A DNA stretch of 64,000 nt from Piromyces finnis finn (lineage: Eukaryota; Fungi; Neocallimastigomycota). This document shows positions 1-58,386 of the stretch, piece after piece. Below the pieces are notes generated by a model. That model had not been told where the DNA came from, made no database searches, and saw only the letters and a list, made by a program, of their open reading frames with translations. A program made the position numbers and the translations under genes. The stretch's first letter is position 1. Each line of letters starts with the position of its first letter. The stretch is from contig MCFH01000024.1 in NCBI GenBank assembly GCA_002104945.1, positions 1 to 64,000 of the forward strand. The letters are read 5' to 3'.

Positions 1-805
1 TCCCCTTTTTTTGTTCTTGATGTTTTTCCTGCTTCTTTTTCGATATTATTTACTCTGTTCTATGCTATTCTCGTTTTATTTTTTTCTTGTTCCTGCTTCT
101 CTTGTTGTTGTTATGACTCTTGTTTTTTTATAGTAGTTCTTTTCTTCCTTTTTTATTACCTCCACAATTACTAGTTACTGATGTGTCTTGTATTCTCCAT
201 TATTTATTTTCAATTAACATCCCATGTTCTTTTATATAAGGCAATACCATATTTAATAAATTATTATAATCGTTAGCTCTAGATTTTTCTTCAATTTGGT
301 TTATAGCATCTTCACATTCCTTTAAAGACAGATTTTGATAAAAATTCTTATCTTCTTTTTCTTCCTCTTCATTAATTTATTTTTCATGTATTTTTTTATT
401 TTTTTTTTAAAATCTTAACTTTAATTAAAATATATTTTTTTCTTTATTATTAAAATACTTTCCAATAGGAAATCCGAAATCATATCTGCCATATCCACTA
501 TTTTAACATATTCATATTACTTTTAATGATTCGATTTAACATACTATTTTTATATTTTTTAATTTGACTTAAATTTTCATTTTTTTTTCAGTTAATTTGG
601 GTTTAAGATGTTCAATAGTGTATTTGTAATCTTTAGATTCTTCATCTTTAAAATTTAAATAAAGAACAGGATATTTATAAAATCCTCTCATGCTTTTTCT
701 ATTTTTAGAAACTTCTAAACTATCAAATAAATCATTTCTTAAATTTTTTCTATTAATAGGCCTTTCAAAGAATTCTTGAATCATTTTTAAATTAAAACTT
801 TTATT
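1..805 (-). pseudogene. AAA-ATPase-like / PD-(D/E)XK nuclease pseudogene, copy 1 (internally deleted, frameshifted)
   Basis: ORF 569..844 (NLKMIQEFFERPINRKNLRNDLFDSLEVSKNRK..YPVLYLNFKDE) is homologous to ORF 12597..13484. About 240-500 reads SGYGRYDFGFP...LKECEDAINQIEEK..(frameshift)KYGIALYKRT, matching the nuclease C-terminus at 56.5-56.9 kb. Most of the middle of the gene is missing. Confidence 0.8.
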
Positions 806-2596: not shown

Positions 2597-4249
2597 TTAT
2601 ACATTAAAAGTCCATTGATCATGATCAATATATCTATTAAAATATTTATGAAATTCATGGTTTTTTATTGTTGTAGATAATATGTAAGTATTTTTATCAT
2701 CTCCTCCTGCTTTTTTTAATTCTTTTAAAATATATTTTACTTTTTGTTCTGATGATCTTTTATCAATAACAAAGAGATTTTCAATGATTTTATAGTTGTC
2801 GTTCTTCAAGGCGAAAGTATACCATTCATCTTGAAAATTGTTATAATGAAGAAATTCCTTCACCAATAATAAAAATATTTTATTTTTCTTTTCTTTTATT
2901 AATAATTTTAATATATATTGAGGTATATTTAACTTTTCAATTTTTTTAAATTTGTTTTTTAATATTTCAATAATGTAATCGAAATTTTCATACGAAAAGT
3001 TTTTTTGATGAATTAAAAATTGTATCACATTGTTGAAGGAATTGTCCTTATCCAAAAATCTATAATTAATATCCGCACCTTTAGAAATAAGAAAGGTGCA
3101 CACATCTCTTCTATTTATTAATAATGTATAAATGACTAAAGGTACTGATTCATTAATTAATGTACTTGGAATCTCATAATTGAAGTTAGTGTATGAGAAC
3201 AAGTTTATTATTTTTTTAAGTGAATCAATAGAAAATCCTGAAGTAATACAATTTGTTAATACGTCATAATCTGAAGAGTTTATATCATTTATTAATATTT
3301 CATTTTCTTGATAAAAATAAAATATTCTTTCCATATTTCCGGTCTTTATAAATTGACTTAATTCCATTCTTTTCTTAATCAAAATTTTATTCAAATATCT
3401 GTTAAGATGATTAGTATCTAATATATTATTTAAGAAAATATTTTTATACTTATAGTTAATTATGAATTCATATAATTTAAGGGAGAATCCAGGATATATT
3501 ATATCATTATTATTATCCATTATGAATTCAATTTTTTCTCTAATTGAACTTGGAATATCATAACATGAAAAAAATTTTAATTGATCAAATGAACTACAAT
3601 AAATACACCTATAGTACCATTGATATGGTACATCAAAATTTCTTTCATTAATAATTATTTTATCAAATTGATCTTTCGATATGCTTTTTTTTGATTGGTA
3701 TATTTTAAGTAATTTAATAACAAAGTTTTTATCGCACTTATATTTGATATATTTGGATGCTAAATTGAAGTTAAAACTATAATTGTAAATATAATCTTTA
3801 ATCTCCATTATATTCCAATTTTTGTTTAAAAGATATGAAAGAGTTTTAGTAGTTAGTAAATTTTTTTCAATTAATAATTTGACTATATTAATATTGTGTT
3901 GAGTAAAATTAATATCGCCCCCTTTGCTGATAATGAAATCTGCAATTTTAAAATGATTGTTAGCAATTGCAGCGTATAATGGGGACTTTATTTCACCATT
4001 TTTGAAAATGATGAACTTGTTAAGCGGATAATTCTTTTTTTCAATTAACAAATCTAAATATGCAATTGGAACATTGTATTCAATTGCAGAAATGACCTCA
4101 TCAAAATCTTTTTCCTCAATTAAATGGTTTGGTTGAATCATTTCATTTGATACTTCTATATCCTCAAATAACTCTATATCTGAAGTGTAAGAATTATTTG
4201 ACAAGATCATTGTTGAAGTTTCAGTACTATCAATTTCAAAAGATGACAT
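2597..4249 (-). CDS. Ankyrin-repeat protein, 550 aa, single ORF
   Basis: Ankyrin-like motifs KSPLYAAIANNHFKIADFIISKGGDIN and VPLVIYTLLINRRDVCTFLISKGADIN; uninterrupted ORF in very AT-rich DNA. Confidence 0.85.
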   Translation of the reverse strand: MSSFEIDSTETSTMILSNNSYTSDIELFEDIEVSNEMIQPNHLIEEKDFDEVISAIEYNVPIAYLDLLIEKKNYPLNKFIIFKNGEIKSPLYAAIANNHFKIADFIISKGGDINFTQHNINIVKLLIEKNLLTTKTLSYLLNKNWNIMEIKDYIYNYSFNFNLASKYIKYKCDKNFVIKLLKIYQSKKSISKDQFDKIIINERNFDVPYQWYYRCIYCSSFDQLKFFSCYDIPSSIREKIEFIMDNNNDIIYPGFSLKLYEFIINYKYKNIFLNNILDTNHLNRYLNKILIKKRMELSQFIKTGNMERIFYFYQENEILINDINSSDYDVLTNCITSGFSIDSLKKIINLFSYTNFNYEIPSTLINESVPLVIYTLLINRRDVCTFLISKGADINYRFLDKDNSFNNVIQFLIHQKNFSYENFDYIIEILKNKFKKIEKLNIPQYILKLLIKEKKNKIFLLLVKEFLHYNNFQDEWYTFALKNDNYKIIENLFVIDKRSSEQKVKYILKELKKAGGDDKNTYILSTTIKNHEFHKYFNRYIDHDQWTFNV

Positions 4250-5774: not shown

Positions 5775-7345
5775 ATGAAAAGAGCTTCTAACTCTTCCCG
5801 TTCTTCGACACTGATTCATTACGAATTATTATTATTTATTATTTGATTCTATATTTGAATTTCTTTTTTGCCTTATCCTTTTCAACATCGACACTCCCAG
5901 CAACAGTTGGTCTTGTGGTATACCTAAGGTACTTATATCCACCACTCTTGCAACATGAACAGTAATTAAGACAAACTGGATCAATAAATTTAGCATATTT
6001 TGAAACTCTAGCATCCAACCTGTATCCGCTTCTTGTTTCAATAGCCAATAGAAACCATAGGCAAACTCTGGGTACTCATAACATAATTTAATAAAATTTT
6101 TAGTTTCAATAAATTTATTATCGTCATAATATTGTGCTTTGATTGAATTTCCCTTGGGATCTTTCCAATAAATGTTTTTAACTGTTTTAATATCTCCATG
6201 CTTCTTTAATTTTTTATTAAGTGCCCTACTTGATTTGTACCATGTATATTTTCTAAATTTATGAATGTAATTTGCAAAGTGTGAGATAATATAATTTGAG
6301 TTTTCCCACTTGTTAGCATAACACATGTAACCTGAGCTAATGCGCATTTGGCCGACAATGGAGGAATATTCAAATCTTTTGAAATAAAGTATAGAGATAT
6401 AAACGATACAGCCTTATAAACTCCGGCAACCCATCATATTCCTTTGTTAACATTCTTCTGAACAATCCTATACCTAGCTTTGTTGGATCCAAGTAATGGC
6501 GCAAAGTATGAAACTCTGCTGATTACTTGTGAGTTAAGTATTAGCTTTTTGAAAGAAATAGGAATATTAGGATTTCTTAAGAATTTACTGACTTAGAAAA
6601 GTCCTTTCAAAATCTTATTATTAAGAATTTTAATAACTGATTTAAGGGAGAAATTCTTATTAAATGAAACACCAAGATAAGTATAGCAATCAGTAGTTGA
6701 AATGAGTTTTCCTGCTAAATAAAATATTGGATCTTTCTTGTTCTGATTTTCTGATGATTCAGAACGAATCACCATCGTTGAACATTTCTGGATAACAAAT
6801 TCCATTTCATTATACAAAATCCATTCATTAACTCTTTTTAGCAACTTTTTTAAGCATCCTCTTGATGGAGCACAAATAACTATATCATCTGCAAAAAGTC
6901 CACCACAGCATCGAATACCTCCTAAAATAACTCCGAGATCTTTGCACTCTTTAAAAATATCATTAATAAAGAGATTAAACAGAATAGGTGAAAGTGGGCA
7001 ACCTTGACGGACTCCTTTCTTCGCATCAAAAGATTTTGAGAATTGACCATCTAATTTGAAATTAGCCTTAGATGTTAAATATAAATTTTTGATAAATTGT
7101 AAACTCTTACTTCTGATTCCTAAACATTCTAATTTATGGAGAATATTACCGATTGGGACTGAATCGTATGCTTTCTTGAGATCTAAAAAGGCTAAATAAA
7201 TATCTTTATTATCTAATTGACATCTACGACATATTTCTTGGATTGAAATGAAAAGACTGATACTTTCTTCCTTTTTACGAAATCCAAATTGTTTGAATCT
7301 AATGAAATTATTCTCAAGACCATATTCTGAAATTCTAGTGTTTAT
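5775..7345 (-). mobile_element. Degraded, 5'-truncated non-LTR retrotransposon (LINE) RT copy
   Basis: ORFs 6593..7360, 5832..6347 and 5839..6048 reconstruct RT motifs FLDLKKAYDSV, GVRQGCPLSPILFN, LFADD and a partial C-terminal Cys cluster, with stops and frameshifts. Visibly highly similar to 51312..53462. Confidence 0.93.
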
Positions 7346-8599
7346 TTCTAAGTCAAACAAACTATATACAATTAAGTTATTGTTTCATTTTTATTCACAC
7401 CAGCGGTTTTTAAATATTTCATTGTATATTAAAATATATTAAAATTGAGAATAGAATTGGATTTATTTTTATTTTTTTTTTTCTTTTACTAATATTAATT
7501 TAAAATCTTGCTATAATACTTCCTATTGTATTTTTATAATAAAACTATTATCCTATTTAAAATATTTGCCAAATTCATAATCTCTTTCACATTCATAATT
7601 TTCAAATAATTCTTTCAATACGATTTTCAATATTTTTTTTTTTCCTTTTGAATTAATAAATAATTTAATAACTTTAAATCTTAAGAATTAAAATATCTCT
7701 ATTTATGCAAATCATATATATTTAGACTGTATTGCTATTGACTATTTTATACTTTTATAATAATCATTGTTCATTTCTATTTATATATATATTATACTTT
7801 ATAATATGAGTTATATTAATATCATCATTTCATTATAAAATTGAAAAAGATAAAATGATATTTTATCCCATTTATATTTATATAAAAAGACTATTTTTAT
7901 AATGTTCAAATTCTTTCTTAAAAAAAAAATGAAAATTTATTAATAATTTAATTTTATAAAACATTTTGCCACCAATCATAGTTTAATATAGAAATATTTT
8001 TCAATAGGATGATTTTAGCTACTCTTTGATTGATGTATCATGGATCATGGATGTAACATCTAATAACTTACTACTGTAATTACATTTTATATTTAATGTT
8101 TATATGTTTTAACTTTATGGTTTAATTTTAATTATCATACTTTTACAATACTTTATTGTATTGATTTATTGTTATTTGAATTTTCAATAATTAATATATA
8201 TTATTTGACAAATACATGATAAAAAGGAAGATTACAAAAAAAAAAAAAAAAAGAGAGAGAGAATTGAGACAATTATTTCAGTATATTTATATAATAAATG
8301 TTTTGAAAATTACTGTTTTAAAAATTATTGAATTTTTAATGAAGAAATAATAATAATTTATTCAATAATATAATATTTATTTAATATACTACTTGGATAT
8401 TCATACAGTGTTATAATAAATAATTTCACAATATATATAAATGTTTTTTCTTTTTAAAGAAAAGAAAAACTAAAAGAATGTTATCAACCATTAAAATTAC
8501 AAACTTTTTAATTTTAATAATTATATATAATGGAAATGATACATAATACTAATCAATGTTTTTAATAGAGTTATTCATAAAATATTAATTATTGTTTAT

Positions 8600-12379: not shown

Positions 12380-13600
12380 GATTATAATTTAAATTAATCA
12401 AAATATATTTTCTTTATATTCTTTCTCATCTAATAATGTTAAATATCCAGAATACAATAAAAGTAGTAATATTTCATCTTCATAATATTTATTTTCAAAA
12501 ATAAATTCGTTAAATACATTTAATATAATTATATTACCATAGAGTAAACTTAAGAAATTTCTTGTAAATAATAATTCATTTTCTTCAATAATTTTTTTAT
12601 AATACTTTGTTTTCCACTATTACACCAATAATTTTCATATTCAATTTTTTTTCCTTTTTACTACTATATTCTTTGATAAAATTCATTATGAAAAAAGGAT
12701 TATACAAATTCTTAATAGTACCTTGACCATTTGTATGGCATATATAGCCATCATATTTCTTTCGAATCATATCCCTTTGATTGTCTGTATGGGTAATGCC
12801 AAAATCAGATAAAATTTTATTTAATCCATTTTCAGTAAATCCATAACAATCATTAAAATATTGATCCTTAAGGAATGAACATTTTTGATAATTATTAAAC
12901 CCTGAATAAAAACTACTAAATTCAAGAGGTAAACATCCGGTTATTATTCCAAAATAAAGATTACCATTTCCTTTAAATGTATTTGAAAATAAAGATTTAA
13001 TAATACTGTACATTTCATCATAGTACTTCTTTTCAAAAGAATTCATAAGAGCTTTATCATACTCATCAATTAAAACAATGCATTTTCTCTTATAAAATTT
13101 TTTCAAACAGTCGCATAAAAATCTAATAGATTCTTTTAAATCTATCTCATCTTCTTTCTTATCTTCTATTTCTTTCCATTTGGTTTGTTCGTTTTTGTCT
13201 AAAATTTTGAAATCAACATTTTCTCTTTGATTTATAAATAAATCAGATATTTTGTTTTTAAGATGTTCAATAGCATCTGCATAATTATTAGAATCTTCAT
13301 CTTTAAAATTTAAATAAATAACAGGATATTTGTGAAAATCTCTCATATTTTTTCTATTTTTAGAAACTTCTAAACCATCAAATGAATCATTTCTAAGTTT
13401 CTCTCTATTAACAGGCTTTTCAAAGAATTCTTGAATCATTCTTAAATTCAAACTTTTTCCAAATCGCCTTGGCCGTACTATCAAATAAACATTTTTTTTT
13501 ATTTATTAAATTTTGTATCATTCTAGTTTTATCAACAAAATAATAATCATTAATATTAAAATTGTTATAATCTTCACCGGAATATATTTCTTATGGCATT
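12380..13600 (-). pseudogene. AAA-ATPase-like module with canonical motifs (copy 2, second module), 3'-truncated
   Basis: Reads EMP*EIYSGEDYNNFNINDYYFVDKT..VYLIVRPRRFGKSLNL (Walker A), VLIDEYD (Walker B), GIITGC and YNPFFIMNF. A frameshifted continuation LLLLYSGYLT lies at ~12440-12480. No nuclease domain is visible downstream. Confidence 0.85.
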
Positions 13601-13642
13601 TCTTTTTTTTTTTGAATTTCTCACCATAATTTATTTCATAAA

Positions 13643-15482
13643 TTACATCACATTTTTTTTATAGATAGCTATTCCATATTTAATAATTTTTTCATTCTTT
13701 TTGTTTAAACTTTTACCATTAAATATTAATTCTTCATTATAATCCAATGCTTCATAACAATATTCTTCAAACTCAACATCATCTGGTTTTTCCTTTATTA
13801 TAATATAAAAAATTTTTGATGAAGTTTCATAATCAACATTATCATTTTGATATTTCTTATCAACAAATAGTAATTCACGAATATTTTCTTTTTCATTAAA
13901 ATTACTCTTAGTAATAATTTTATAACCGTCATCTAAACATAACAATGAATAGATAATAGCATAATAATTATCTAAGTAACTAGGTTGGTTATGGTTATCA
14001 TAATAGTTGACTTTGTTCATATTATTTTCAAGAAATTCTTTTATTCTTTCTTCATCATAATATTTTATAAAATTATTAATTCCATTAATTATTTCCTTAT
14101 TATTTTTATACAAATTCTTTTTCCATTCAATGAATTTATTTTTAATTCTTCAATAGCTTTATTTCTTATTATTAATTTTTTATTATTTTCATCTTCTGTA
14201 TTAATATCAATCAAATAACCATATTCAATAAATAATGACCAAATAATTTCTCGATGATCTTTATATCTATTTTTTTTAATATGTTAAAAATTGAAAATTT
14301 AGGAATTGACTTTTTTATATATCCATTTTTTAAAAGATAATCAATATCTTTGATCAAAATGGGATCAAAATCACTAAATACTTCATTAAAAAATTCTTTT
14401 TCTTGTAAAGAAAGATTATTATACGATTATTCTGATAAAATCTTTTTTATACAATCACATACACAAGATATATCATAATATTTAACTTTATTACTATCAT
14501 AATCATTATTAATATCTTTATTATTATTAGAAAGTGTGGATGAAATTAAAATATTTATTTTATTTGTTTTATTTGTATTATTGATATCCGTTGAATTTAA
14601 AGATAATAATGTACTTTCAATATTATTATAATATTTTTCAAACAATTCACTTTTATTTTTTAATTTTAATTTATCTAAAAGTTTTCTCAATTCAAAATTG
14701 GTTATACTATAATATTCAATATATTTATTATTAAATATAGAGTAATTTCTTGAATCAAAATTACTAAATAATTTAATATTAATTTTTCCAGTAATAAATG
14801 TTTTAAATAAATAAGCATATTTATAATTGTTTTCAAAAATTTTTTTAAAAACATTTATGTAGAATGTATAAAACTCATCATAAAAATCTTTATTTAAAGC
14901 ATTTAATATGGGTGAATCATAGTTGTCAATTAATAATACGATTTTTCTTTTCAATAAATTTTTTAAATTATTACATAAAAAACCAATTGAAACTATTAAG
15001 TCTTCTTCATCAACATCATTACATTCTTGAAAAGATTCCCATATTTTTTTATCATCTTTTAAATTAGTAATATCAACATCTTTATAGCATTCATATAAAT
15101 CTCGAATAAACCTTTTAAATTTTTTAATCGTATCGTTAAAATAATTTCCAATTTGGAAAGTATTAAAATCAATATATACTACTGAATATTTTCCTTGATA
15201 AAGATCAATATAACTTTCACCACCTTTAAATTCTTTTGCTATATTTAATTCTTCAAAAAACTCTCTATTCTTTGAAACATTTTCATTTTCATAATTCATT
15301 TCAAAAAAATAGCGCATCATATATAAATTAACAGTCTTTCCACTTGAAGGTCCAGTAATACAAAATATCTTTGAACAATCATCTATAAATTTTTTTATTA
15401 ACTCGTCTTTTGTTAATTTTCTTTTTTTCTCGGGGGATTCAGCAGAAGAATTGTGAACCTCTTCATCATTCTGCCGTTTCAT
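13643..15482 (-). pseudogene. Degenerate AAA-ATPase-like + nuclease-like module (copy 2, first module), frameshifted
   Basis: ORF 14427..15482 has TGPSSGKTVNLYMMRYFFE (altered Walker A) and LLIDNYD (altered Walker B). ORF 13643..14113 ends in KYGIAIYKK like the other copies but lacks the GRYD/ExK motif. Confidence 0.75.
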
Positions 15483-15743
15483 TTTTACTTTTTTTTTTAT
15501 TTTTTTTATATATTACCTTTTTTTTTGTTATTGTTGTTGTGTTGCTTGATAAAATATAATTTTTATTTTTGTTGAAATAACTCATCTTATATATAAAATT
15601 TATGATAATATGATATAAAAATAATATGTGACTTGAACATATTATTATATTAGTAATTTTTCCTAATATTAAATTTATATAGATTTATTATAATATTAAT
15701 TATTTCTACAATGTATAAGAATATAATGTAAATGTACGACAAA

Positions 15744-15960: not shown

Positions 15961-16898
15961 GATAAAATTGTTAATAAAATATATATTAATTAAAGTTTAA
16001 TTCTTTCTACATAAAATTAACCCGTATCAAATATATGGTCACATGACTCTATATCTGATTCAAATATAAAATTTATATAATATAGAGTAGGGTCACTACT
16101 TGAATTTGATATCCAATTCTTTTTTGATGATGTCATTTAGTATTAGCTTGTTTTTACTTTATCCTATTGGGTGGTTAAATCTAAATCTAGTATTAGTAAT
16201 TATTTTCTTTTCTTATTAATAATTCACATCTCTTTGATTATTATATTTTCCTATTAAATAATAATAAATTTTTAATATGCTTTATATGTATTTCTTAATT
16301 ATTAATTATATTGAATACACAAATAAAAAAATAATATTTTTATTTATAATGATGAAAACATTATAAGTATGTTATATACTAAATAACAACATTTCATTAT
16401 ATAAAGTAATTGTAATAATACAAGGTACAATTTCTGTATTTATACACTTTCATTCATCATCATCCGATTAAATAATTAAAAGAGTAATAAATATAAAAAT
16501 ATATTATATATATAATAAATTCATTATATTTTTAATATATAATAACTATCTATTTAAAAACTCTTTTTTTTTTTTCTTTTTTCCTTTTAATACTATTATT
16601 CAATATTTATTATTTATTTATTTATTATTTTATTTATTTATTTATTTATAAATTAAATATTTTTATTAATTTAAGGCATGGATTAAACTTAGCCACCACC
16701 ATTAACTTTATTCAAAAAGTTTTTTAATTACAATTTACTTTTTCATTTTAAATAGAATAATGAATAGAATAATAGAATAATGGCATTCATAATAAATATT
16801 ATAAAATATTATAAATGTAAATAAAGGAAAAATAAAAATGTAGAGTATGCATTTTTATTAAAAATAATAAATAAAAAAAAAGGTAGGTGTTATTATGC

Positions 16899-17004
16899 GA
16901 TTTTAATATTAATATATTTTAAATTGTGTTGTTTTTTTAAAGTATTCCTTGTATTGAAAAAATCCCATAATAAATTCACTTTTTAATATGATATTAACTG
17001 AATA
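16899..17004 (+). repeat. Dispersed repeat, second copy at 56187-56273
   Basis: 32-nt exact match GATTTTAATATTAATATATTTTAAATTGTGTT, plus a second block CCATAATAAATTCACTTTT..GATATTAACT in both copies. Confidence 0.75.
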
Positions 17005-17544
17005 GATTATGTAATCTGTATTTATAAAAGATGAATCCTTAATATAGAAAGATATATTAGCATCCACAATAAGTATAATTCTAACATATCTTACTGTACA
17101 CTATTAATAAAATATTCAAAATTCATAATTTTAATAATATTAAAATAATGATATAACTAAAGATTAACATTACAAGATATTATTTCCTCTTTCCACTTTC
17201 TTATTCATACCTATTTAATTTGTGCCACATAATATATGAATTATGGTTTATACCTTTGACCTATTACAATCAATACATTAACCATTGTAATACATTCTTA
17301 AAGTTGTTTTTTTTTTATTTAATCAGCATTTAAAAAAGTGGAAGAAAAGAATCCTTTTTCCATTTCTTAATAAAAACAATTAATATAATTTTATTTTTAT
17401 TTTTATGAAAGGAATGAATTATGAAGGGGAATGATTAGATTCCTATGTTGATTTTAATATTATAAAATCAATACTTTATTATTAATCAATGAATGAATAA
17501 TAAAATGTTTATGATAGTCATTATGAACTAATTACAACTTTAAA

Positions 17545-26333: not shown

Positions 26334-29300
26334 ATGGTAAAAATTATTTTAATACATAATACCATAGTACCTATATTGAATAATATTTAGAGTCTAACAA
26401 ATATAATATTTTTTTTATTCTATTTCTATTAGGGTTATTATTCTAATCAATTGAAAGCGTTGGTAAAGAGAAATATTCTCTTAAAAAAGGCTTCAAAAAT
26501 TAGAACCTTTTTTGAAATATTTTTACCTATTTTAATGGTGGTCATTACTTGTAAGATAATCTTCAATTTAAAAAAGAAATATAAAGATAGTATAAATTAA
26601 TAAATAATAATAGTAATAATAATAATACATTACTAATATGATTTTTATAATATTCTAATTTATCATATAGATTTAGTAAATAAAATATCAGAAACCAAAG
26701 TATATCCAGCAATGGATCCAACAGGAACTATAAATATTAATGATGTTTTTAGACAATTTTCAATGGCTATGCAATATCAATCAAAAGTACCAACTATTGG
26801 TATTGTATTACCAGAATCATCAAAGGATACTACTATTATAAATAAAATAAAGGAAAATGATATGTTTGTAAATTCTCCATTTGAATTTAGAAACTTTGAA
26901 AATCAAGATCAAATGAATGAATATAATAATGATTTTCATAATTTATTACTTGCTGGTATCATCTTTGAAAGTGATGACTTATTCCATTATACTATTAGAG
27001 TCAATAGTACTACTGCTCCGGAACCAAACGCCGATGATATCACAAATTATATTGAAGGTCGTTACAAATCTGAAAATGGTGAAATAGAAGCGGATACTTA
27101 TTCCTACGTCTTTTCTCCAATTCAAGCAGCAGTAGATCAAGCTATTATTCGTTTAAAAGCAAAGGATGATACAATTACATTGAAACATAATATTGGTAAA
27201 TTGGGTAAAGCTGCTTCTGAATATGACTTAACAGATAATGCAGGTAATCTTGGTTTTTATGTTTCTATGATCTTTATGATGCCTGTTATTGTCATTGCTG
27301 TTTCTCTTGTGAAAGAAAAAGAAGATGGAATTAAAAATGGTTTATTAATGGCTGGTACTCATCCAACATTATTTTGGCTTTCATGGCTTTCACTCTATGT
27401 AGCCATTTGCCTTTTCGTTTCGGTTATCATTACTATTATATTCCATTTCTCTGGTACTTTTTCAAATGTTAACATAATCATCATGATTTTAACCTTGCTT
27501 CTATACGGTTTAAGTTGTTGTAATTTAGCATTTGTTTTTAGTGCCTTTTTCAAAAGAACAAAAACAGCTGGTACGGTTATTTCCATTATTATTGTGTTCT
27601 TTTCTTATGCCAATATGGCTTTACCTTTCATAAGTCTCACTGTAAGAAAAATTGTATCTTTATTTTTATGTCAAATTACTATTGGTTCTTTTATATATGA
27701 AGTGGATGCCTTGGAAAATCATTTCCAAAAACTTTCATTCAGTAATATATTCACATCAAATGCAGGTTACTTTTTCCTAATGTTAATTATAAATAATATA
27801 TTATACTTTGTCCTGGGCCTTCTTTTTGATAATTTATTCTCAACCGAGGATAGTCAATACCTTTTCAAATTTAATAAAAAAATCGACGTTTCCGGTGAGG
27901 AGGATGAAAATACAAATGAAAAAGATGTTCAGGAAGATTTTAATTTCAAAAATGGTGCCAAGTGTATTGCCGAAGTGGATCATGTTTATAAAGTATTCCC
28001 AAAGAAAATCGACAGAGAAGATGAAAAAAAATCAATGGAAAAATCAAAAGAAAATAAAAATCAATTTTTGGCCGTAAACAACGTTAGCTTTAAGGTGTAT
28101 GAAAATGAAATTTTTGCAATTTTAGGTCATAATGGTGCTGGTAAAACAACCCTTATTAATATTATGGTTGGTCTTTTAAGAGCATCAAAAGGTGGCGTTT
28201 ATTATGATGGTTTAGACATTGCTAAGGATACAAACACTATTCGTAAAAATTTTGGTGTCTGTGCTCAAACGAATACTATTTTTGATGAACTTACCGTTGA
28301 AGATCATATTAAATTTATTGCTGATTTAAAGGATGTTCAGGTTGATGTCGATGAAGTTTTAACCGAAATCGATCTCATTCATCAAAAGAATTTAAAGGCA
28401 TCAAAATTAAGTGGTGGTCAAAAACGTAAACTTTGTATTGGTATGGCTACCATTGGTAATCCAAAATACGTCTTTTTAGATGAACCAACTACCGGTTTGG
28501 ACCCTCTTTCCAGAAGAAAAATTTGGGATCTTTTATTGAAAAAGAAAAAGGGAAGAGTTATTTTCCTTACCACCCACTATATGGATGAAGCCGATATTCT
28601 TGCTGACCGTAAATTAATTCTTTCCAAGGGTAAAATTCGTTGTCTTGGTACGAGTCTCTTCCTTAAAAATCATTTTAATATGTGCTACAATTTAGACGTA
28701 GAAACCAGTGATAAGGAACGTATTCATTCCATCATTCAACATCATTTGACCGATTTTACCTACGTTCGGAATCAAAATAAGGAGGATGATAGCTCCGGAG
28801 AAAAAAATAAAACTAGCAATAATTATGGCATTGAATGTCATACCTGGCGTTTACCATTAAATGCTACCGATAAATATGCCTTGCTTTTGAACGATTTAGA
28901 GGGTCAAATGAACCAGCAAAATGGTTTAGTTCAGAAATATGCTTTAAATATGCCAACCCTAGAAGAGTTATTTATTCGTTTAGAAGATCACTCTATTACT
29001 GCTGTTGAGGATGAGGATACCAAAGAAGAAATGTCGGGTCAGGAACACTTTAGAATACAAATGGATACAGAATTACCAAAATTAAAACCAGTCCAAAAAC
29101 CAAATAGCTTATTCCTTATTTTCTCTCTTGTCAAATCAAGAATAAAAATATTTACCAAGGACAAGGTATTTACCTTCTTTGCCATTCTTTTCCCAGCTAT
29201 TGCCACAGGGGTCATGTTCTTTATTGCCAATAAAATCTTTAATGGAGATCCAAAACCAACAGAATCAAGAGTACTTTCCGTTCAAAATGTTTATGGCAAC

Positions 29301-31520
29301 ACCTATTTAAACTATGAACCTCAATCGCAACTTCATCTTTCCAAAGAAAATATTCTTGTGGGAACAGGTATTCATGACAACATGCTCTCTTCACATTCCT
29401 TAACGGAAATCCCTAATCCAGAAATAGGAGGTACCTATTATCTTTCTTCTCTTGGTGGTCAAGAAGTTGAAAATACCTATGACTTACAAATTCACTACAA
29501 TGATACCATGACCCATGCCTTACCAGCAACGTTTAATGCTATTAGTAATGCTATTCTTGCCTCCAAAAATATTGATGGTAGAATTGTTACCACTTCTCAT
29601 ACATTTGCTAAAGGAGATGATACCATGGCTATTGTTAGTTTGTCTTTGGCTGGATTTATGATTGGATACTATATTTCAAATAATATTAATCGTTTTGGTC
29701 CTTTAGTTGTTCGTGAAAGATCCAACCAACTTTTACAACAACTTCAATTAAATGGTGTATCTCGTTTGAACTATTGGATTTCCTGCTTCATTTCTGATAT
29801 CCTTCTTTTCATTATTACTTGTATTTTAATTTTCATTATTGGTTTACTTGTTCGTTATGAACCTTTAATGGACTTTAAGATCATCGTCATCATCTTTATA
29901 TTATTAATTATTTGGAGTGTTGCTTCCATGCTATTCCAATACGTTACCAGTTTTCTTTTCGAAAAAGAAGATACGGCTTTCTCCATGTCTTCCTTTATAA
30001 ATACTTATCCTGCTATCTTTGGTTATATTATCTTTATTTTAATTAACGGAAAGTATAGTGTTGTCGAAGGTATTCTTGAAGGAAAGGGAATTCTTGCCAC
30101 TGTTCCAAACGTATATAATATAGTTCTTTCAGCTCTTTTCCCATCCTATGGTTTTATTGGTATGGTGAATTCAATTTTCACCATGAAGGTATACGAAAAA
30201 TTAATCCACTATGAAATAAAACTTTCCACTCTTTTAAGATTTGATAATGGTATTTTACCGATCATTATTGTTCATGCGGTCCAAGCCGTCCTTTATTTCC
30301 TCCTCATAATTAATCTCGACCGTAAAATAAATCAAACCAATAAAAGTGATATATACGATATCCCATCCGGTGTCCTTCAACGATGCCAAGAACATCTTGA
30401 CGAAGGGGATGATGACGTCAAAAAAGAATATGAATATGTCAAGGAAAACCAATTTGATCTTCCATTGAGTGTTCTTCACCTCAGTAAGGAATACAAAGCA
30501 TCCCTTCCTTCCGATAAAGAAAAGGCTGCAGAAATTTCTGCTAGAGATCCTCAAAACTTTACCTTTGGTGAAATTCATAAATCTCCGGTTACGGGTAAAT
30601 ACGTTAAGACTGCCGTCATTGATGTTAACTTTGGAGTTAGAAATCATGAATGTTTTGGTCTTTTAGGTCCAAATGGTGCTGGTAAGTCTACCACCTTAAA
30701 CACCGTAACCTCTACCATTCCACAAACTACGGGTAAGGTTTGTTTTAATGGAGTAGAAACTCATATTGCACGTTTAGGTGAAATTTCCATGGGTTACTGT
30801 CCACAAAACGATATTCTCTGGAAGGAATTAACTCTTCGTGAACATCTTGAACTTTTCTTAAGAATTCGTGGATACACCTCTCAAGAAGCTCGAGACTATG
30901 CTACACGTTATATTGATATTATTGGTGTTGAAGAACATCAAAATAAACGTGCCGATAATTTAAGTGGTGGTACCAAGCGTAAACTTTCTCTTTTAATTGC
31001 TATTTGTGGCTATCCAAAACAAATTCTTTTAGATGAACCTTCCGCTGGTATGGATCCATCCACTCGTCGTTTAGTTTGGAATATTATTAAGAAAACTAAA
31101 AACATGAATGATTCTGCCGTGATTATGACTACTCATTCTATGGAAGAAGCCGAATTCTTATGTGATCGTTTAGCCATTCTTGTCAATGGACGTCTTTCTT
31201 GTATCGGTTCTCCTGAACATTTAAAGATGAAATTTGGCGATAGTTATATTCTTGAACTTCAATCTAAGGATGTAGAACGTTTCCATCATGAAATTATTGA
31301 AAATGGTAAATTATTTGGGGAAAAGGAATACAAAATGGATAAATCTTCCAGTGATCGTGTAAAATATGAAGTTAAAATGACCCATAATATTGGTTATGTC
31401 TTTGGTATTATGGAAAATTGTAAAAAGAGTGGTCTTGTCACCGATTATAGTTTTAATCAAACCACCCTAGAACAAATATTTATTAACTTTGCAAAGGAAC
31501 AAATTATTACTACAGAATAA
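26334..31520 (+). CDS. ABCA-subfamily full ABC transporter, 3 exons (26334-26336, 26433-26550, 26671-31520), ~1656 aa
   Basis: Two TMDs and two NBDs: GHNGAGKTT/LSGGQKRKL/LDEPTTGLD and GPNGAGKST/LSGGTKRKL/LDEPSAGMD. The upstream exon GYYSNQLKALVKRNILLKK..FEIFLP is the typical ABCA N-terminus and splices in frame to the 1602-aa ORF. Confidence 0.95.
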
Positions 31521-32520: not shown

Positions 32521-35500
32521 TTATTTTTTATTTTTAGCTTTTTTGATTTGTGGTCGATATCTAGCATCTAAAAGAATTTTCGCAATTGGTACATTATTTT
32601 GTTTAATGGTGAGCTTAAGCGGTGTGAGATAATTTGGTAATTGATAATAGGGATTGGCATGATGAAACATAAGTAATTCAACTAATTCTATTTGATCCTT
32701 TTCAATGGCATATATTAATGGAACTTTACATTCCTGTGGATGTTCATAATTGACATTGGCACCAAGTAAGAGAATTAACCCTATAAACTCAAAAAGTTTA
32801 AAATATTCTGAGGTTTTCACGATAGGTGTCGTTGGCGCGGGCAATGCCTGTTTTTTGGTCGATACCACCTTTTCAAGATAAAGTTTGATAAGATACAATA
32901 ATGGAGTATTTTGATCTTTATCTAACTCGTTAATATTAAAATCTTTGTGCTTCGATAGATAGTTTAATCCCTGCCGATTTTGATATTTTAAACAATAATA
33001 AAGTGGTGTCAAATGATCAGGTCCATAGGTCTGATGAATCGATAGGTTTGGTAATAATAAATCCAAAAGCTGAGAAGATTGTTGTCGCTGATAGTTTTTT
33101 AAAAGGTATGAGAGGGGTGTGTCTCCATGGTTATCTGGTATTGTTAAATCCGGATGATAGGAAAGTAGTGTACGAACACATTCCAATTTTTCATATTTTA
33201 TGGATAATAAAAGTGGTGTGGTATTTTCAGGACCTCCTACTTCATTTAAATCTTCTATAAAATTTTTTAAATACGCTTTAATACATATAGGTTTATTATG
33301 AATACAATAGTAATGCAATTCGGGGTAACCTTCAACAATAACTTTTCTTTTTTCCTTCAATTTAGTATGACCAGCATTTTCCGGTTGATCTGATTCCTTT
33401 ATTTTATCGGTAGGATTGATTTTATTTTCCATGATAGTTTCATTTACCTCGGCTTTATTTTCTTTTCTATTTATATTTGTGTCAGAGTCTGTATTCTGAT
33501 TTTTATCTTTTTCTAATTCAGTTATGGTATCATCTTTCCTTGTTTCCTTATTCTCTTTTTCTTCATCTGAAAATGAACTTTTTGTTTCCTTATTCTCTTT
33601 TTCTTCATCTGAAAATGAACTTTTTGTTTCCTTATTCTCTTTTTCTTCATCTGAAAATGAACTTTTTGTTTCCTTATTCTCTTTTTCTTCATCTGAAAAT
33701 GAACTTTTTGTTTCCTTATTCTCTTTTTCTTCATCTGAAAATGAACTTTTTGTTTCCTTATTCTCTTTTTTTTCATCTGAAAATGAACTTTTTGTTTCCT
33801 TATTCTCTTTCTTTTCATCTAAAGATATAGGGTTTGTTTCATTCATTTCATAAGATTTCACGATTTTCTCTTTGTCATCTTCATCATCACTCATTGCTGC
33901 TCTCAACTTTTCTTCGTCACTTTTATTCTCTGAATTAATATGACTAGATATTGAAATATATTCACTCTTAACTTTTCTCAAAACTTTTATTTTTTCTTTA
34001 TCTGGTTCATTGTTTTGTACTGGTATAGATGAGGTATTTAATTTAACAAGATTATTGGGATAGAGAGGATATTCATCACTTTTATTATAGCCATCTTCTT
34101 CACTTGGTGATTTTAAATCTTGATTAGTAAAATGAAAAACATTCACCATACTTTTATTACCTGGTAGTAACGGAAGATTGGATATTTCAGCAGATGTATT
34201 TTTCAATGAATCGATGTACAATTTTATTTCACGTATATAACGATCCCCAGCTTTGGGTTTTGTTTTTAATTCAAGTTCATTAATTGGATAACATACTTTT
34301 AATCGTTTGTATTCTTTGGAATGAAATACTTCATACACAAGCTTTGGATGATAATTGTATAATATTTTTTTAAATAAATTAAAATTATTGCAAAGAATAG
34401 TATGGAAAAGAGGAGAATGTTCATGTTCATCTCTTTCTTCAACCGGTGCCCCATTTTCCAATAAAGCGTTAACCAAATTGGTTTTTGTTCTATCAATAAA
34501 AAAAATAAGTGGTGTGGAAATATGTTCTACTTCACCATTTGACTTTTGGACATAAAATCCATTTCTAATAATAGATTTAATCAAACCCACATTTCTTTCT
34601 ATTAAATAACAAAGATCCTTTAACCACTCACTCTTCTCATTAACTCTTACATAGCTTTGATCAATGGCAGCTCTCTGCTTATACAATATATTAAAGGTTT
34701 CTTCATCATCAATCACATGATCAATTAAATGACTCATTATAGATTTTCCGTCGATAACCATTTGATTAGATATTAAAGGATGCTTTATTATTATTTTTTT
34801 TAATAAATCGTAATTTCGTTCTTTAATAACTTGCTTCATTAAATCATTGGTAATTTTATTACCTTTAAAATTAAAATTTACAGCGAAACGACTTTCTTTA
34901 TATTTCATTAGTATATTAAAATATCCTTCTCGATCTTTTTTATTTAAATCATTGTTGTGTAGAAGATACATAAAAGGAGTTTCACCATCTTTGTTTTTCT
35001 TATTGAGATCTGGATGGTAGCTATACAAGAGTTCTCTAAAAAAATCAATATTATTTATTTTTATACTTATAAAAATAGGAGTCATACCTTGATTATCAGG
35101 TTGATTTGTTGAAATTCCAACATCCAATATTTTTTTTGCCAAAATTAATCTTTCTTTTTTAATAAAAAAGTTTACAGGATTAAAAATATGAATTATTTGT
35201 CCTTGTTTATTAGTTGTCACTAATCCACGTCGAGCTATTGTTCGTATAAGACTATTATTATCTTCAATAAAAGAAACTCGATCTTTGTATGTAAATTCAT
35301 AAGGAATAATAAAACCTTTTTTTACATATAATAAATTGTATAGTTCCTCATCTCTTATTTTATTGTTGATAAGCTCTTTCATTATAAAAGCGAAATCTAC
35401 ATTAATTTTTGTAGAAAAAGAAAGAATATTTTTTTTAAATTCTTCTAGATCTCTAACCCTAATGCCATCAATAAGAGATTTCATTAATTTTTTTTCATTT

Positions 35501-35583
35501 GGATTACTAATATTATCTATCCATAATATGTTGGATGGAAAAGATGGCAAAGGATTAATAAACGGGTTGTATATATTATACAT
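32521..35583 (-). CDS. Ankyrin-repeat protein, 1020 aa, with a central charged repeat linker
   Basis: Ankyrin motifs GMTPIFISIK, GETPFMYLL, HSPLFHTIL, TTPLLLSIK, GDTPLSYLL, NTPLLYLIK and VPLIYAIEK flank a low-complexity E/K/S region. Confidence 0.9.
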   Translation of the reverse strand: MYNIYNPFINPLPSFPSNILWIDNISNPNEKKLMKSLIDGIRVRDLEEFKKNILSFSTKINVDFAFIMKELINNKIRDEELYNLLYVKKGFIIPYEFTYKDRVSFIEDNNSLIRTIARRGLVTTNKQGQIIHIFNPVNFFIKKERLILAKKILDVGISTNQPDNQGMTPIFISIKINNIDFFRELLYSYHPDLNKKNKDGETPFMYLLHNNDLNKKDREGYFNILMKYKESRFAVNFNFKGNKITNDLMKQVIKERNYDLLKKIIIKHPLISNQMVIDGKSIMSHLIDHVIDDEETFNILYKQRAAIDQSYVRVNEKSEWLKDLCYLIERNVGLIKSIIRNGFYVQKSNGEVEHISTPLIFFIDRTKTNLVNALLENGAPVEERDEHEHSPLFHTILCNNFNLFKKILYNYHPKLVYEVFHSKEYKRLKVCYPINELELKTKPKAGDRYIREIKLYIDSLKNTSAEISNLPLLPGNKSMVNVFHFTNQDLKSPSEEDGYNKSDEYPLYPNNLVKLNTSSIPVQNNEPDKEKIKVLRKVKSEYISISSHINSENKSDEEKLRAAMSDDEDDKEKIVKSYEMNETNPISLDEKKENKETKSSFSDEKKENKETKSSFSDEEKENKETKSSFSDEEKENKETKSSFSDEEKENKETKSSFSDEEKENKETKSSFSDEEKENKETRKDDTITELEKDKNQNTDSDTNINRKENKAEVNETIMENKINPTDKIKESDQPENAGHTKLKEKRKVIVEGYPELHYYCIHNKPICIKAYLKNFIEDLNEVGGPENTTPLLLSIKYEKLECVRTLLSYHPDLTIPDNHGDTPLSYLLKNYQRQQSSQLLDLLLPNLSIHQTYGPDHLTPLYYCLKYQNRQGLNYLSKHKDFNINELDKDQNTPLLYLIKLYLEKVVSTKKQALPAPTTPIVKTSEYFKLFEFIGLILLLGANVNYEHPQECKVPLIYAIEKDQIELVELLMFHHANPYYQLPNYLTPLKLTIKQNNVPIAKILLDARYRPQIKKAKNKK
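33540..33822 (-). repeat. 42-bp coding minisatellite, about 6.7 copies (DEEKENKETKSSFS)
   Basis: Near-perfect tandem units, in frame within the ankyrin ORF. Confidence 0.95.
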
Positions 35584-36673: not shown

Positions 36674-36801
36674 GACTTCCAATGGGACACCGAGCCAAAG
36701 ACCAAAATTTTATCATGGGACAAAATTATGATCTCCATTGGTTGCGCTGGCCCTCCTGGCCTGTCTTACTGTTTCTTCAGCATTGACGCTCTTGGATGTT
36801 G
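36674..36801 (-). mobile_element. Short retroposon-like / LINE 3'-end fragment related to the 56995-57140 insert
   Basis: GC-rich island. Its reverse complement matches the first 44 nt of the 57-kb insert at 39/44, and both end near GGAAGT(C/T)AAA. No TSD is visible for this copy. Confidence 0.7.
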
Positions 36802-55992: not shown

Positions 55993-56186
55993 AATAAAAA
56001 ACATTAAAAATAAATATTAAAAAAGTAGATATAAAATGAAAATAAAAAAATAAAAACTATTAAAATAATTTTCAAATATAATAATTATTTAAAACATTAT
56101 ACCATTATACATGTATATAATGAATAATTAACTTTTTATTATTAAAATAGAAAATTTTATTAAATAAAAAAAAATAGTTAGTATGG

Positions 56187-56273
56187 GATTTTAATATTAA
56201 TATATTTTAAATTGTGTTATTTTTGTCAAGTATTTCCATAATAAATTCACTTTTAGTAGGATATTAACTAAAT
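56187..56273 (+). repeat. Dispersed repeat, second copy at 16899-17004
   Basis: Same 32-nt exact block and downstream block as at 16.9 kb. Confidence 0.75.
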
Positions 56274-56666
56274 ATTATTAAAACTCGGATTTCTTTAATT
56301 AATGAAAAATTACAATTCTTTACATTTTTCCAGTGCCTCTTATTGCTTTAGTCGTTGTACCTCTTGCCTTTCTTGTTGTTTTACCTCTTGTTGCTTTTGT
56401 TCCTTTTATTCCTATTGTTCCTGTTGTTATTGCTCTTTTTTTTTTTTACTATTATTATTTTTATCATCATTACTAGATTTTGATGAGCTTTGAATTTCTC
56501 CATTATTTATTTTCATTTTGATTTCACAAGTTCTTTTATAAAAGGCAATACCATATTTTACAAAACTATTATAGCCATTAGCTCTATATTTTTTTTTCCT
56601 ATTCTTTTTTTTCAATTTGGTTTATAGCATCTTCACATTCTTTTAAAAGACAGTCTTTGATACTAC

Positions 56667-56766
56667 TTTCATTTTCATTTTCATTTTCATTTTCATTTTC
56701 ATTTTCATTTTCATTTTCATTTTCATTTTCATTTTCATTTTCATTTTCATTTTCATTTTCATTTTC
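56667..56766 (-). repeat. (GAAAAT)n hexanucleotide repeat encoding (EN)n, about 16 units
   Basis: Seen directly, in frame inside the nuclease domain. Confidence 0.9.
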
Positions 56767-56994
56767 TTTTTCTTTTTTTTTTTCATTATTTTTTCGTTTA
56801 TTAGATTTTGTATTTTTCTTAAAAGCTTTAATTTCAATTAAAATATACTCTTTTACTTCCTTATCATAATTATTTTTATTAGGAAACCCGAAATCATATC
56901 TACCATATCCACTATTTTCTTCCGCAGTTAAACCATTAATTTTAAAAAATAAAAATAATTGCATTAATAATACTTGATAAGCATTTTCATACGT

Positions 56995-57140
56995 GAGCGT
57001 CGAAGCTGAAGAAACAGTATGACAGACCAGGAGGGTCACAACCACCTAGCAATAGGAATGAGCCAACGTTTCTCTAAGAACCACCATTGGGGCTAACTCC
57101 GATCGATGGGAGAAATGCACTCGGAAGTTAAAAAAAAAAA
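56995..57140 (+). mobile_element. 146-bp poly(A)-tailed retroposon insertion with a 10-bp TSD
   Basis: TTTCATACGT at 56985-56994 and 57141-57150 flanks a GC-rich insert ending in GGAAGTT plus an A run. Excision restores the host reading frame. Confidence 0.92.
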
Positions 57141-58386
57141 TTTCATACGTTTTGGATTTAACATACAAGTGATATGCACTGAATTTTGATAAATATTCAT
57201 TTAAATTTTTATAAATATCTTTATTAAAAATACCATTAATAAATTTTTTAATCGTTTTATCTTGTGCGATTTCTCATTTATTTTCTATAATAGGTCTTAG
57301 CAAAACCAACAAAACTATCTAAAACTTCACCATTCGAAATTTTAACATATTTCTTATTATCTTCATCAATATTATTTAATATATAATACTTATATTTTTC
57401 AATTTGATTTGAATTTTCATATTCTTCAGTTGATTCTGGTTCATCTAATGATAAATTATTTACTTCAACTTTATCTAATAACAGTTTTGTTATTTGGTCA
57501 TTCATATTATTTATATTTTCTTTATATTCTTTCTCATCTGATAATGTTAAATATCCAGAATACAATAAAAGTAGTAATATTTCATCTTTATTATATTTAT
57601 TTTTAAAAACAAATTCATTAGATACATTTAATATAATTATATTAGAAATTTTTTGTAAATAATAATTCATTTTCTTTAATATTTTTTTTTATAATACTTT
57701 CTTTTCCACTATTACACCTATAATTTTCATATTCAATTCTTTTTTCCTTTTTACTACTATATTCTTGGATAAAATTCATTATGGAAAAAGGATTATACAA
57801 ATACTTAATAGTACCTTGACCATTTATATGGCAGTATAGCCATCATATTTCTTTCGAATCATATCCCTTTGATCGTCTGTATGGGTAATGCCAAAATCAG
57901 ATAAAATTTTATTTAATTCATTTTCAGTAAATCCATAACAATCATTAAAAAATTGATCCTTAAGTAATGAACATTCATGATAATTATTAAACCCTGAATA
58001 AAAGCTATTTAATCCAAGAGGTAAACATCCGGCCGGTTATTATTCCAAAATATAAATTATCATTTCCTTTAAATGTATTTAAAAATAAAGGTTTAATAAT
58101 ACTATACATTTTATCATAGTATTTCTTTTCAAAAGAATTCATAAGAGCTTTATTATATTATATAAATTAAAACAATGCTTTTTATAATTGATAATATTTA
58201 ATTTATTATTACTTTCAAAATTATTATTTTATTTTAAATACTTTTAACTTTTATTATACATACATATCCATATACATATATAAAAATAATTTGAAAAAAT
58301 ATTTTACATTAGAATACTTTAATTTATTACTAATTAGTTTTATTTTTTATTTTTTATTTTTTTTTTATCATTTTATTTATTACTAA

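Follow-up and report, generated by a model that had tools for sequence, protein, structure and literature searches.

The closest described relatives of the gene family analyzed here are the DUF1703 proteins, which are widespread in bacteria and archaea, have undergone massive expansion in some symbionts, and pair an AAA-ATPase-like domain (PF09820) with a PDDEXK_9 nuclease domain (PF08011). To our knowledge, no DUF1703 protein has a tested function. Here we analyze a locus within a 64,000-nt stretch of the genome of the anaerobic gut fungus Piromyces finnis (contig MCFH01000024.1, positions 1 to 64,000; hereafter the window), which an initial annotation of this DNA had described as two tandem ATPase/nuclease modules, the first degenerate and the second canonical. 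The family to which the locus belongs has the same domain pair as the bacterial and archaeal proteins and has their motifs in common (YYVDKT, RPRRFGKS, LIDEYD, GRxD, ExK and QIxxKxY). Unlike a single DUF1703 protein, the fungal gene has two modules, M1 and M2, in one open reading frame (ORF), the first of them apparently dead, as well as a basic N-terminal extension and a eukaryotic host. Overall, window positions 15611-12404 very likely hold a pseudogene of a family in which a dead M1 is fused to an active-looking M2, and whose intact protein would be a nuclear, ATP-gated nuclease.

Several other systems invite comparison. Cardinium cCpun carries an expansion of 25 DUF1703 paralogues that recombine with one another and whose function is unknown, and the fungal family is likewise multi-copy with recombining paralogues (PMC6387759). 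The STAND/NLR NTPases (RPP1, NRC4, CED-4 and Apaf-1) have a similar nucleotide-binding, helical and winged-helix core, and the antiviral STAND proteins Avs3 and Avs4 couple an NTPase to a nuclease effector, as the fungal gene does. The fungal family differs from STAND/NLR proteins in its C-terminal nuclease and in having no sensor repeat domain (Pfam searches gave no LRR, TPR or WD40 hit), and the likeness is one of resemblance only. The best structural matches of the M2 ATPase are PAB2304 (2qen) and SSO1545 (2fna), proteins of the Pfam ATPase_2 type whose function is poorly known and which, unlike the fungal gene, are single-module, have no nuclease domain and show only 14-16% identity. The initial annotation had also pointed to Crinkler-type effectors. 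Nothing in our analysis supports this link: a Pfam search of all window pieces at E up to 1 gave no Crinkler-related family, the fungal N-terminus is a basic tail with no signal or header, and the ATPase is PF09820. We found no literature joining DUF1703 with Neocallimastigomycota or anaerobic fungi; nucleases go unmentioned in both surveys of horizontal gene transfer that were checked, as do ATPases in the one that was also checked for 'ATPase'.

RESULTS

A fused double-module gene in anaerobic gut fungi

A word-index search with M1 confined its subfamily to Piromyces, Orpinomyces, Neocallimastix and gut metagenomes. The gene models P0017 (P. finnis) and P0007 (Orpinomyces) read from the end of M1 into the start of M2, and an exhaustive HMMER search with P0007 returned 3,133 relatives, 17 of them at E 1e-30 or better; some of these measure 872-1,101 aa and contain two PF09820 stretches. 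On a 12.9-kb anaerobic-fungus metagenome contig (L004; 18.8% G+C, CotH/CBM10 neighbour), a 957-codon ORF begins at an MKR..KKKQK N-terminus and spans M1, the junction (..YEINYGDNFKRREMPKNIYSGENYKRFNTNKFFFIDKTKMISKLIEKEDDVFLITRPRRFGKS) and the M2 ATPase; a single 7-nt duplication (+7) ahead of NLYNPY separates it from a 386-codon ORF with GYGRYD, ILIEIK and QIEKKKY. At least 16 contigs, drawn from several samples, encode the identical 957-aa protein, and one further contig encodes a variant that differs by one residue (P0140). In Neocallimastix 'constans' (L008), one frame shift in a T run, after LLIDNYDSLILNSLNT, precedes a 1,109-codon open frame that takes in the remaining M1, the junction and the complete M2. 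Orpinomyces P0024, metagenome P0144 and L012 likewise read in frame across the junction. The proposal that the two modules stem from one in-frame fused gene is thus upheld by uninterrupted sequences, and double-module homologues, whose absence would have spoken against it, exist in both L004 and L008.

The remaining loci have the same arrangement. In N. lanati (L013), a 700-codon ORF covers all of M1 and a 525-codon ORF covers M2; gene model P0142, itself in frame across the junction, bridges a shift that lies immediately ahead of it. In Piromyces sp. E2 (L002), a 933-N gap separates M1 from an M2 with GLGRYD and ILIEVK. At each of the eight loci for which downstream DNA is available, M2 directly follows M1, and the linker between them is ~8 residues long with no stop. 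PF08011 was matched in fuller relatives (43.6 bits in P0141; a match was also recorded for the second L004 ORF). Calculated with 0.11 stops per codon, the chance that such frames stay open has an ln P of -84 to -131 (-110 for L004 and -131 for L008). A metagenome scan with a junction profile recovered a single locus only. Judged from these sequences, the fused M1-M2 architecture is real and old, and the family is specific to anaerobic gut fungi, with an intact protein of ~1,320-1,350 aa made of two tandem DUF1703-type modules.

Two variants of the arrangement were observed. In the metagenome protein P0148 (668 aa), the M1 C-terminal domain is cut short and ..NIRELLIINKNYIDAFKN.. abuts the M2 motif YFIDKTKM directly, which we read as a natural internal deletion of the pseudo-nuclease. 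Piromyces sp. E2 also has a very divergent single-module member (L002 4815-6677, minus strand; 620 aa, VTRPRRFGKT, PF09820 and a weak PF08011), encoded 1.3 kb away from the double-module locus and on the other strand, with a Mutator-like (MULE) transposase-like gene 4 kb downstream.

Conservation of M1 as an apparently dead module

We judged motif conservation across genera that are ~50% identical overall. The altered Walker B motif of M1, LL(I/V)DNYDS, with Asp-Asn in place of Asp-Glu, is present in 8 of 9 copies, the Orpinomyces copy having LLIDGYDS, and the M1 P-loop keeps GKT (RPSGYGKT, GPPGCGKT, IPYECGKT; one residue shorter in the P. finnis copies). FYIDK(S/T)L is likewise kept, and (D/N)IRELL and YI(T/I)I(K/N) occur in all copies. 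Profile-profile comparison (hhalign) of the C-terminal 270 residues of M1 with the PDDEXK_9 region of M2 and prokaryotic proteins gave a probability of 96.9% (E 1.6e-10, 197 columns) and placed IRE over GRYD and ITIK over IEIK. The M1 domain is thus a nuclease homologue in which the motif II Asp is replaced by Glu and the catalytic Glu of motif III is lost to Ile or Thr, with the Lys kept. M2 of the family retains RPRRFGKS, LIDEYD, GxGRYD, IEIK and QIExKxY. In line with the initial annotation, these patterns suggest that M1 is a conserved, catalytically dead module and not a product of random decay.

The same annotation had noted a resemblance of the M1 N-terminus to a bipartite nuclear localization signal (NLS), and this extension is present in the window copy and conserved across genera as a basic stretch of ~15 residues (KR...KKRK). 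The classical NLS pattern is matched at the sequence level, with KR at residues 2-3 and KKRK at 19-22, and KK(R/I/Q)K occurs in 12 fungal sequences; its 15-residue spacer exceeds the 10-12 of textbook signals. In the M1 model, residues 1-28 have low confidence and are presumably flexible or disordered.

Predicted fold

M1 and M2 were modelled separately. The M2 model (predicted local distance difference test 77.3, predicted template modelling score 0.66) best matched the archaeal Walker-type ATPases 2qen (Z 16.6) and 2fna (Z 16.0), at a root-mean-square deviation of 3.9 Å over 307 residues of the ATPase and winged-helix region. The nucleotide-binding, helical and winged-helix domain core of the NLRs RPP1 and NRC4 and of CED-4, Apaf-1 and Avs3 matched at Z 11.7-14.1 (~14 for RPP1, NRC4 and CED-4), and the M2 C-terminal domain matched CidB PD-(D/E)XK nuclease domains at Z 10.8. 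The M1 model (77.0 and 0.73 on the same scales) has the same ATPase fold at lower Z (2qen 10.7, 2fna 10.2, Avs3 10.5). The predicted structures therefore place the ATPase nearest to archaeal Walker-type ATPases and STAND/NLR NTPases.

Origin of the family and prokaryotic double modules

Outside the fungi, M2 is closest to proteins from gut Clostridia-type metagenome-assembled genomes (33-37% identity), and fungal M1 and M2 are ~31-34% identical to each other. In a tree of the ATPase parts from a quick maximum-likelihood search, with Shimodaira-Hasegawa-like approximate likelihood ratio test (SH-aLRT) supports, fungal M1 sequences form one clade (99) and fungal M2 sequences another (100), with the 26 sampled prokaryotic rows lying across a branch of support 88 from the fungal modules. 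The tree fits, without proving, a single acquisition after which the gene was duplicated and fused within the fungal lineage.

Double modules are not confined to fungi. Three prokaryotic DUF1703 proteins, P0263 (1093 aa), P0157 (1165 aa) and P0176 (1036 aa), have two PF09820 modules each and resemble the fungal gene in that the first is degenerate. The first module of P0263, whose contig also carries carbon monoxide dehydrogenase/acetyl-CoA synthase (CODH/ACS) genes, has VLIDGYD (Walker B Glu lost) and no GRxD next to a canonical second module; that of P0157 has ILIDDYD; and that of P0176 has lost the P-loop Lys (RPRQFGLT). Unlike fungal M1 and M2, which form clades of their own, the two modules are mutually closest within each of the three proteins (SH-aLRT 100), indicating that these fusions are independent, younger internal duplications. 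The double-module design is therefore not an invention of eukaryotes. Other domain combinations were seen among relatives: a NACHT NTPase ahead of a complete DUF1703 module in P0163 (1107 aa), and an OTU protease domain behind a DUF1703 module in P0212 (1044 aa).

The window copy is a broken member of the family

The locus was read on the minus strand by three-frame translation of 15700-12200 (Table 1). Two PF09820 modules lie head-to-tail in 15482-12404, M1 then M2, both scoring above the Pfam gathering cut-off of 26.1 bits. The M1 ORF opens with MKRQNDEEVHNSSAESPEKKRKL, and evidence for its ATPase part includes an alignment with 14 fungal relatives. The motifs reported for the two modules in the initial annotation are all present, including the altered P-loop and Walker B of M1, and its M1 nuclease part without GRYD/ExK is confirmed, with no nuclease match (PF08011 included) in a Pfam search of 14113..13643. 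The description of M2 as canonical stands for the ATPase half, where P-loop and Walker B are kept, and fails for the nuclease. Homology to full units stops at 12404, and the M2 nuclease domain with its motifs is absent from this copy, whereas the paralogous unit L001 on P. finnis scaffold MCFH01000023.1, which is complete, extends 1.1 kb further through GYGRYD, ILIEIK, QIEEKEY and a basic tail. Neither module of the window copy thus has a Pfam-recognized PDDEXK_9 domain C-terminal to its ATPase.

Table 1. Features of the P. finnis window at the double-module locus, listed in the direction of reading, and other family copies; lesions are scored relative to the L001 paralogue
Feature	Position	Strand	Evidence or remark
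Start of duplicated unit, 5' flank common to L001 unit	15483..15611	-	blastn, 15611-12404 vs L001
M1 ATPase-like part, 351-aa ORF	14427..15482	-	PF09820 55.8 bits, E 6.8e-15; ends at nonsense TAA
NLS-like M1 N-terminus, MKRQ..PEKKRKL	15479-15414	-	
45-nt in-frame deletion	~15402	-	removes LKKLKCSYFYIDKSL (FYIDKSL motif), kept in all other M1 sequences
M1 shortened P-loop, TGPSSGKT	15356-15333	-	
M1 Walker B, LLIDNYD	14936-14916	-	
In-frame TAA	14429-14427	-	G>T; L001 reads GAA
M1 middle region, readable in pieces	14114..14426	-	three-frame translation, indels vs L001
-1 in A8 run	14277-14270	-	
-4 (AATT)	between 14148 and 14147	-	
M1 C-terminal pseudo-nuclease domain, 156-aa ORF	13643..14113	-	profile-profile homology
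NIRELL, at GRYD position of relatives	13885-13868	-	
YIIIKEK, at IEIK position of relatives	13807-13787	-	
M1-M2 junction	13489..13661	-	translation and indel list vs L001
-1	13661/13660	-	
M1 end, DVIYEINYG	13649-13623	-	
+2 in A11 run	13613-13603	-	
Ancestral M2 start ATG	13599-13597	-	
Junction TAA	13593-13591	-	AAA>TAA
M2 N-motif, YYFVDKT	13545-13525	-	
Out-of-frame A9 run	13500-13492	-	RPRRFGKS would be in frame with the M2 N-terminal segment at A8 or A11 only
M2 ATPase-like part, 295-aa ORF	12597..13484	-	PF09820 96.7 bits, E 2.1e-27
M2 P-loop, RPRRFGKS	13475-13452	-	
M2 Walker B, LIDEYD	13073-13056	-	
-1 in G run	12654-12653	-	
-1 in A run	12598-12592	-	
M2 middle-region remnant, NYWCNSGK ... 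YSGYLTLLDEKEYKENIF; coding sequence ends near 12401	12401..12596	-	two -1 shifts
Second family copy, 5'-truncated	56158..58183	-	tblastn; blastn to L001 7781-9834
Third fragmentary copy, internal deletion	14..802	-	M2 N-terminal piece 802-588, nuclease/tail piece 504-14

Window 15611-12404 aligns to L001 5156-8465 at 89% identity over 3.3 kb (blastn). Relative to that unit the window copy has two nonsense codons, seven frame-shifting indels, one 45-nt in-frame deletion and the 3' truncation, and its frame is interrupted between M1 and M2. The initial annotation had counted only poly-A slips and one stop at the junction; the lesions in fact span M1, the junction and M2. We regard them as real because the G>T nonsense change, the -4 and -45 deletions and the truncation are not homopolymer events, and because contigs from a DNA sequencing run (X1) of the same organism carry the window's indel states. 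The states of the window and of L001 are both present in these contigs at 13491, 13603, 14269, 12591 and 12652, with the window's A8 state at ~383/779 depth; at 13657 only the L001 state was seen. The reads of this multi-copy family gave short contigs only, and the indel states are not tied to the window locus by unique flanks.

Comparison of the window copy with L001 by the Nei-Gojobori method (NG86; 38 synonymous and 169 nonsynonymous differences) gave a ratio of nonsynonymous to synonymous substitution (dN/dS) of 0.91, which would reflect relaxed constraint on the window copy; NG86 is biased at 82% A+T, differences are clumped by gene conversion, and such a value from a pair of paralogues says little about the family. 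The differences between the two are clumped, at 0 to 19 per 100 nt with a dispersion index of 3.15, which points to gene conversion among paralogues, and the window copy evolves as a mosaic with them. A retrocopy or processed-pseudogene origin of the dispersed copies is not supported, as homology passes the A-rich tract near the end of the shared 3' flank and the window copy keeps its 5' flank. On sequence grounds we class the window copy as a multiply broken, 3'-truncated pseudogene that has lost its function. A working regulator/nuclease pair, as first envisaged, is accordingly not what this locus holds; it lacks an active nuclease domain and is of little value beyond marking the family.

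Weighing the alternatives

Several observations count against a fused gene family with a functional intact member. Every double-module locus examined is broken somewhere, with a single +7 in L004, a single T-run shift in L008, three or more breaks in L013, and many in L014, L001 and L002. Decay of the entire family is one possible reading of this, homopolymer error in the assemblies another. Comparisons between paralogues give no sign of purifying selection (dN/dS 1.17 for L003 vs L008). In this same Neocallimastix 'constans' pair, M1 coding sequence is 95.4% identical vs 99.45% for the 554-nt upstream flank, and the differences are clumped; either the flank was recently converted or the coding part has undergone accelerated or mosaic change, and the pattern fits diversifying selection, gene conversion and neutrality equally. 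The tree comes from a quick, not a careful, search. PADLOC-DB 2.0 gave no match at E up to 0.01 for P0141, P0285, the second L004 ORF, P0007 or P0263, and searches of NCBIfam and PDB sequences gave none either. Possible transcripts were represented by short exact contigs only, in three runs presumed to be of RNA. Basic motifs rich in K abound in this Lys-rich proteome, and NLS function of the M1 extension is therefore putative.

Much of this would also be expected if the whole family were the dead relic of one bacterial transfer, amplified in repeated DNA and functionless in all anaerobic fungi. At least one break at every examined locus, the three fragments in the 64-kb window beside retrotransposon ORFs, the 296 contigs of at least 90% likeness placed along 3.35 kb in the DNA run, and the dN/dS of ~1 among paralogues all agree with such a relic. 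It does not readily explain how frames of 700 to 1,109 codons stay open despite 0.11 stops per codon, how M1 and M2 motif blocks remain invariant across genera that otherwise share about half of their residues, or why the M1 and M2 clades each span several genera. Taken together, these three features argue for long-term purifying selection, and we consider a wholly dead family unlikely.

M1 and M2 could instead be separate adjacent genes, a regulator and a nuclease, with M2 translated from its own conserved ATG. The Met at the M2 start (KE-M-PKE..) is present in 8 of 9 sequences and matches the starts of prokaryotic single-module proteins, and the P. finnis annotators called separate models. 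There is, however, no stop between VIYEINYG and the M2 Met in L004, L008, L001, P0024, P0144, L012 or P0142, sequences only ~50-65% identical in which chance stops would arise at 0.11 per codon, and the ~8-codon spacer leaves no room for a terminator and a promoter. Separate genes are thus improbable; an internal start that gives free M2 besides the fusion is possible.

A reading close to that of the initial annotation, in which the fused gene at this locus is intact and expressed and its breaks are long-read assembly errors in an 82% A+T genome, is more improbable still and already largely refuted. Six of the nine frame-breaking lesions do fall in A or G runs, L001 has five frameshifts and no nonsense codon, and the window state at 13657 is unconfirmed in the run contigs. 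Homopolymer errors would not produce two nonsense substitutions, the -4, the -45 (FYIDKSL) or the missing last 1.1 kb, nor would they account for window indel states at five sites in the DNA-run contigs or for a dN/dS of ~0.9. We give hardly any credence to the idea that transcriptional slippage or ribosomal frameshifting bypasses the A9/A10 run before RPRRFGKS and that M2 is still made in P. finnis: this run puts each of the two P. finnis copies out of frame, by different amounts, and only the A9 and A10 states, never an in-frame length, reach a share of at least 10% in the DNA-run contigs, but other genera have no homopolymer there (KLIEKEDDVFLITRPRR) and the window copy has many other breaks.

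Other copies and gene models in P. finnis

Two further family fragments lie in the window (Table 1). The second copy starts in the M2 Walker B region and continues through the nuclease domain and the 3' flank. It is interrupted by a comparatively G+C-rich 151-bp insert (56990-57140) that shows 98% identity to L001 1533-1683, on the other scaffold, and 85% to part of window 36739-36791; an Rfam scan of the insert gave no match, and it looks like a young small mobile repeat. Window 16546-17010, upstream of the double-module copy, matches the 3' flank of the L001 unit (L001 9691-10122; 88-96% identity) and ends close to a tract rich in A. This segment is either an independent repeat or what is left of a neighbouring unit that was deleted.

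The window M2 ORF is 100% identical to part of model BCR36DRAFT_397834 (P0020), which begins inside the M1 C-terminal domain and whose predicted introns skip the junction and a later frameshift. BCR36DRAFT_450040 (P0017, at L001) begins in the wrong frame and ends at an out-of-frame A10 run. The P. finnis models at these loci are chimeric patchworks in which frameshifts are hidden by predicted introns. Elsewhere in the window, where G+C is 15-33%, are ORFs for RVT_1 retrotransposons (6593-7360, 51312-53462), an ABC transporter (26712-31520), ankyrin proteins (2597-4249, 32521-35583, 40999-42276) and a GH53-like protein (54649-55992).

DISCUSSION

If the fused dead-M1/active-looking-M2 family is functional as we infer, its intact protein would be an ATP-gated nuclease that acts on DNA in the nucleus and consists of two unlike modules joined covalently as an asymmetric pair. 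Within it, M1 would serve as scaffold or regulator, binding nucleotide without hydrolyzing it and without cutting, and M2 would hydrolyze ATP and cut DNA. With one live PD-(D/E)XK site, such a pair would be expected to nick DNA and not to make a double-strand cut unless it oligomerized further. A role in genome conflict, either in defence against foreign or mobile DNA or as a selfish element, would fit better than housekeeping because the family is multi-copy, turns over fast and recombines, has a STAND/NLR-like fold, and has prokaryotic relatives fused to NACHT.

A broader scenario is possible and distinctly more speculative. A bacterial DUF1703 gene would have been acquired, duplicated and fused, the dead, nuclear-tailed M1 and M2 would form a STAND-like, paralogue-recombining nuclease of DNA conflict, either selfish or resembling innate immunity, and DUF1703 proteins would generally act as asymmetric dimers. 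The asymmetric dimer as functional unit is suggested by the conserved division into dead and live modules in fungi and by three independent prokaryotic fusions with the same bias.

For annotation, the P. finnis models at the family's loci are a caution, as invented introns mask frameshifts there. For anaerobic fungi, where the transfers listed so far are mostly of metabolic genes, the family provides a candidate for a nuclear nuclease system that came from bacteria. If true, an asymmetric-dimer mode of DUF1703 would be the first mechanistic handle on this large family.

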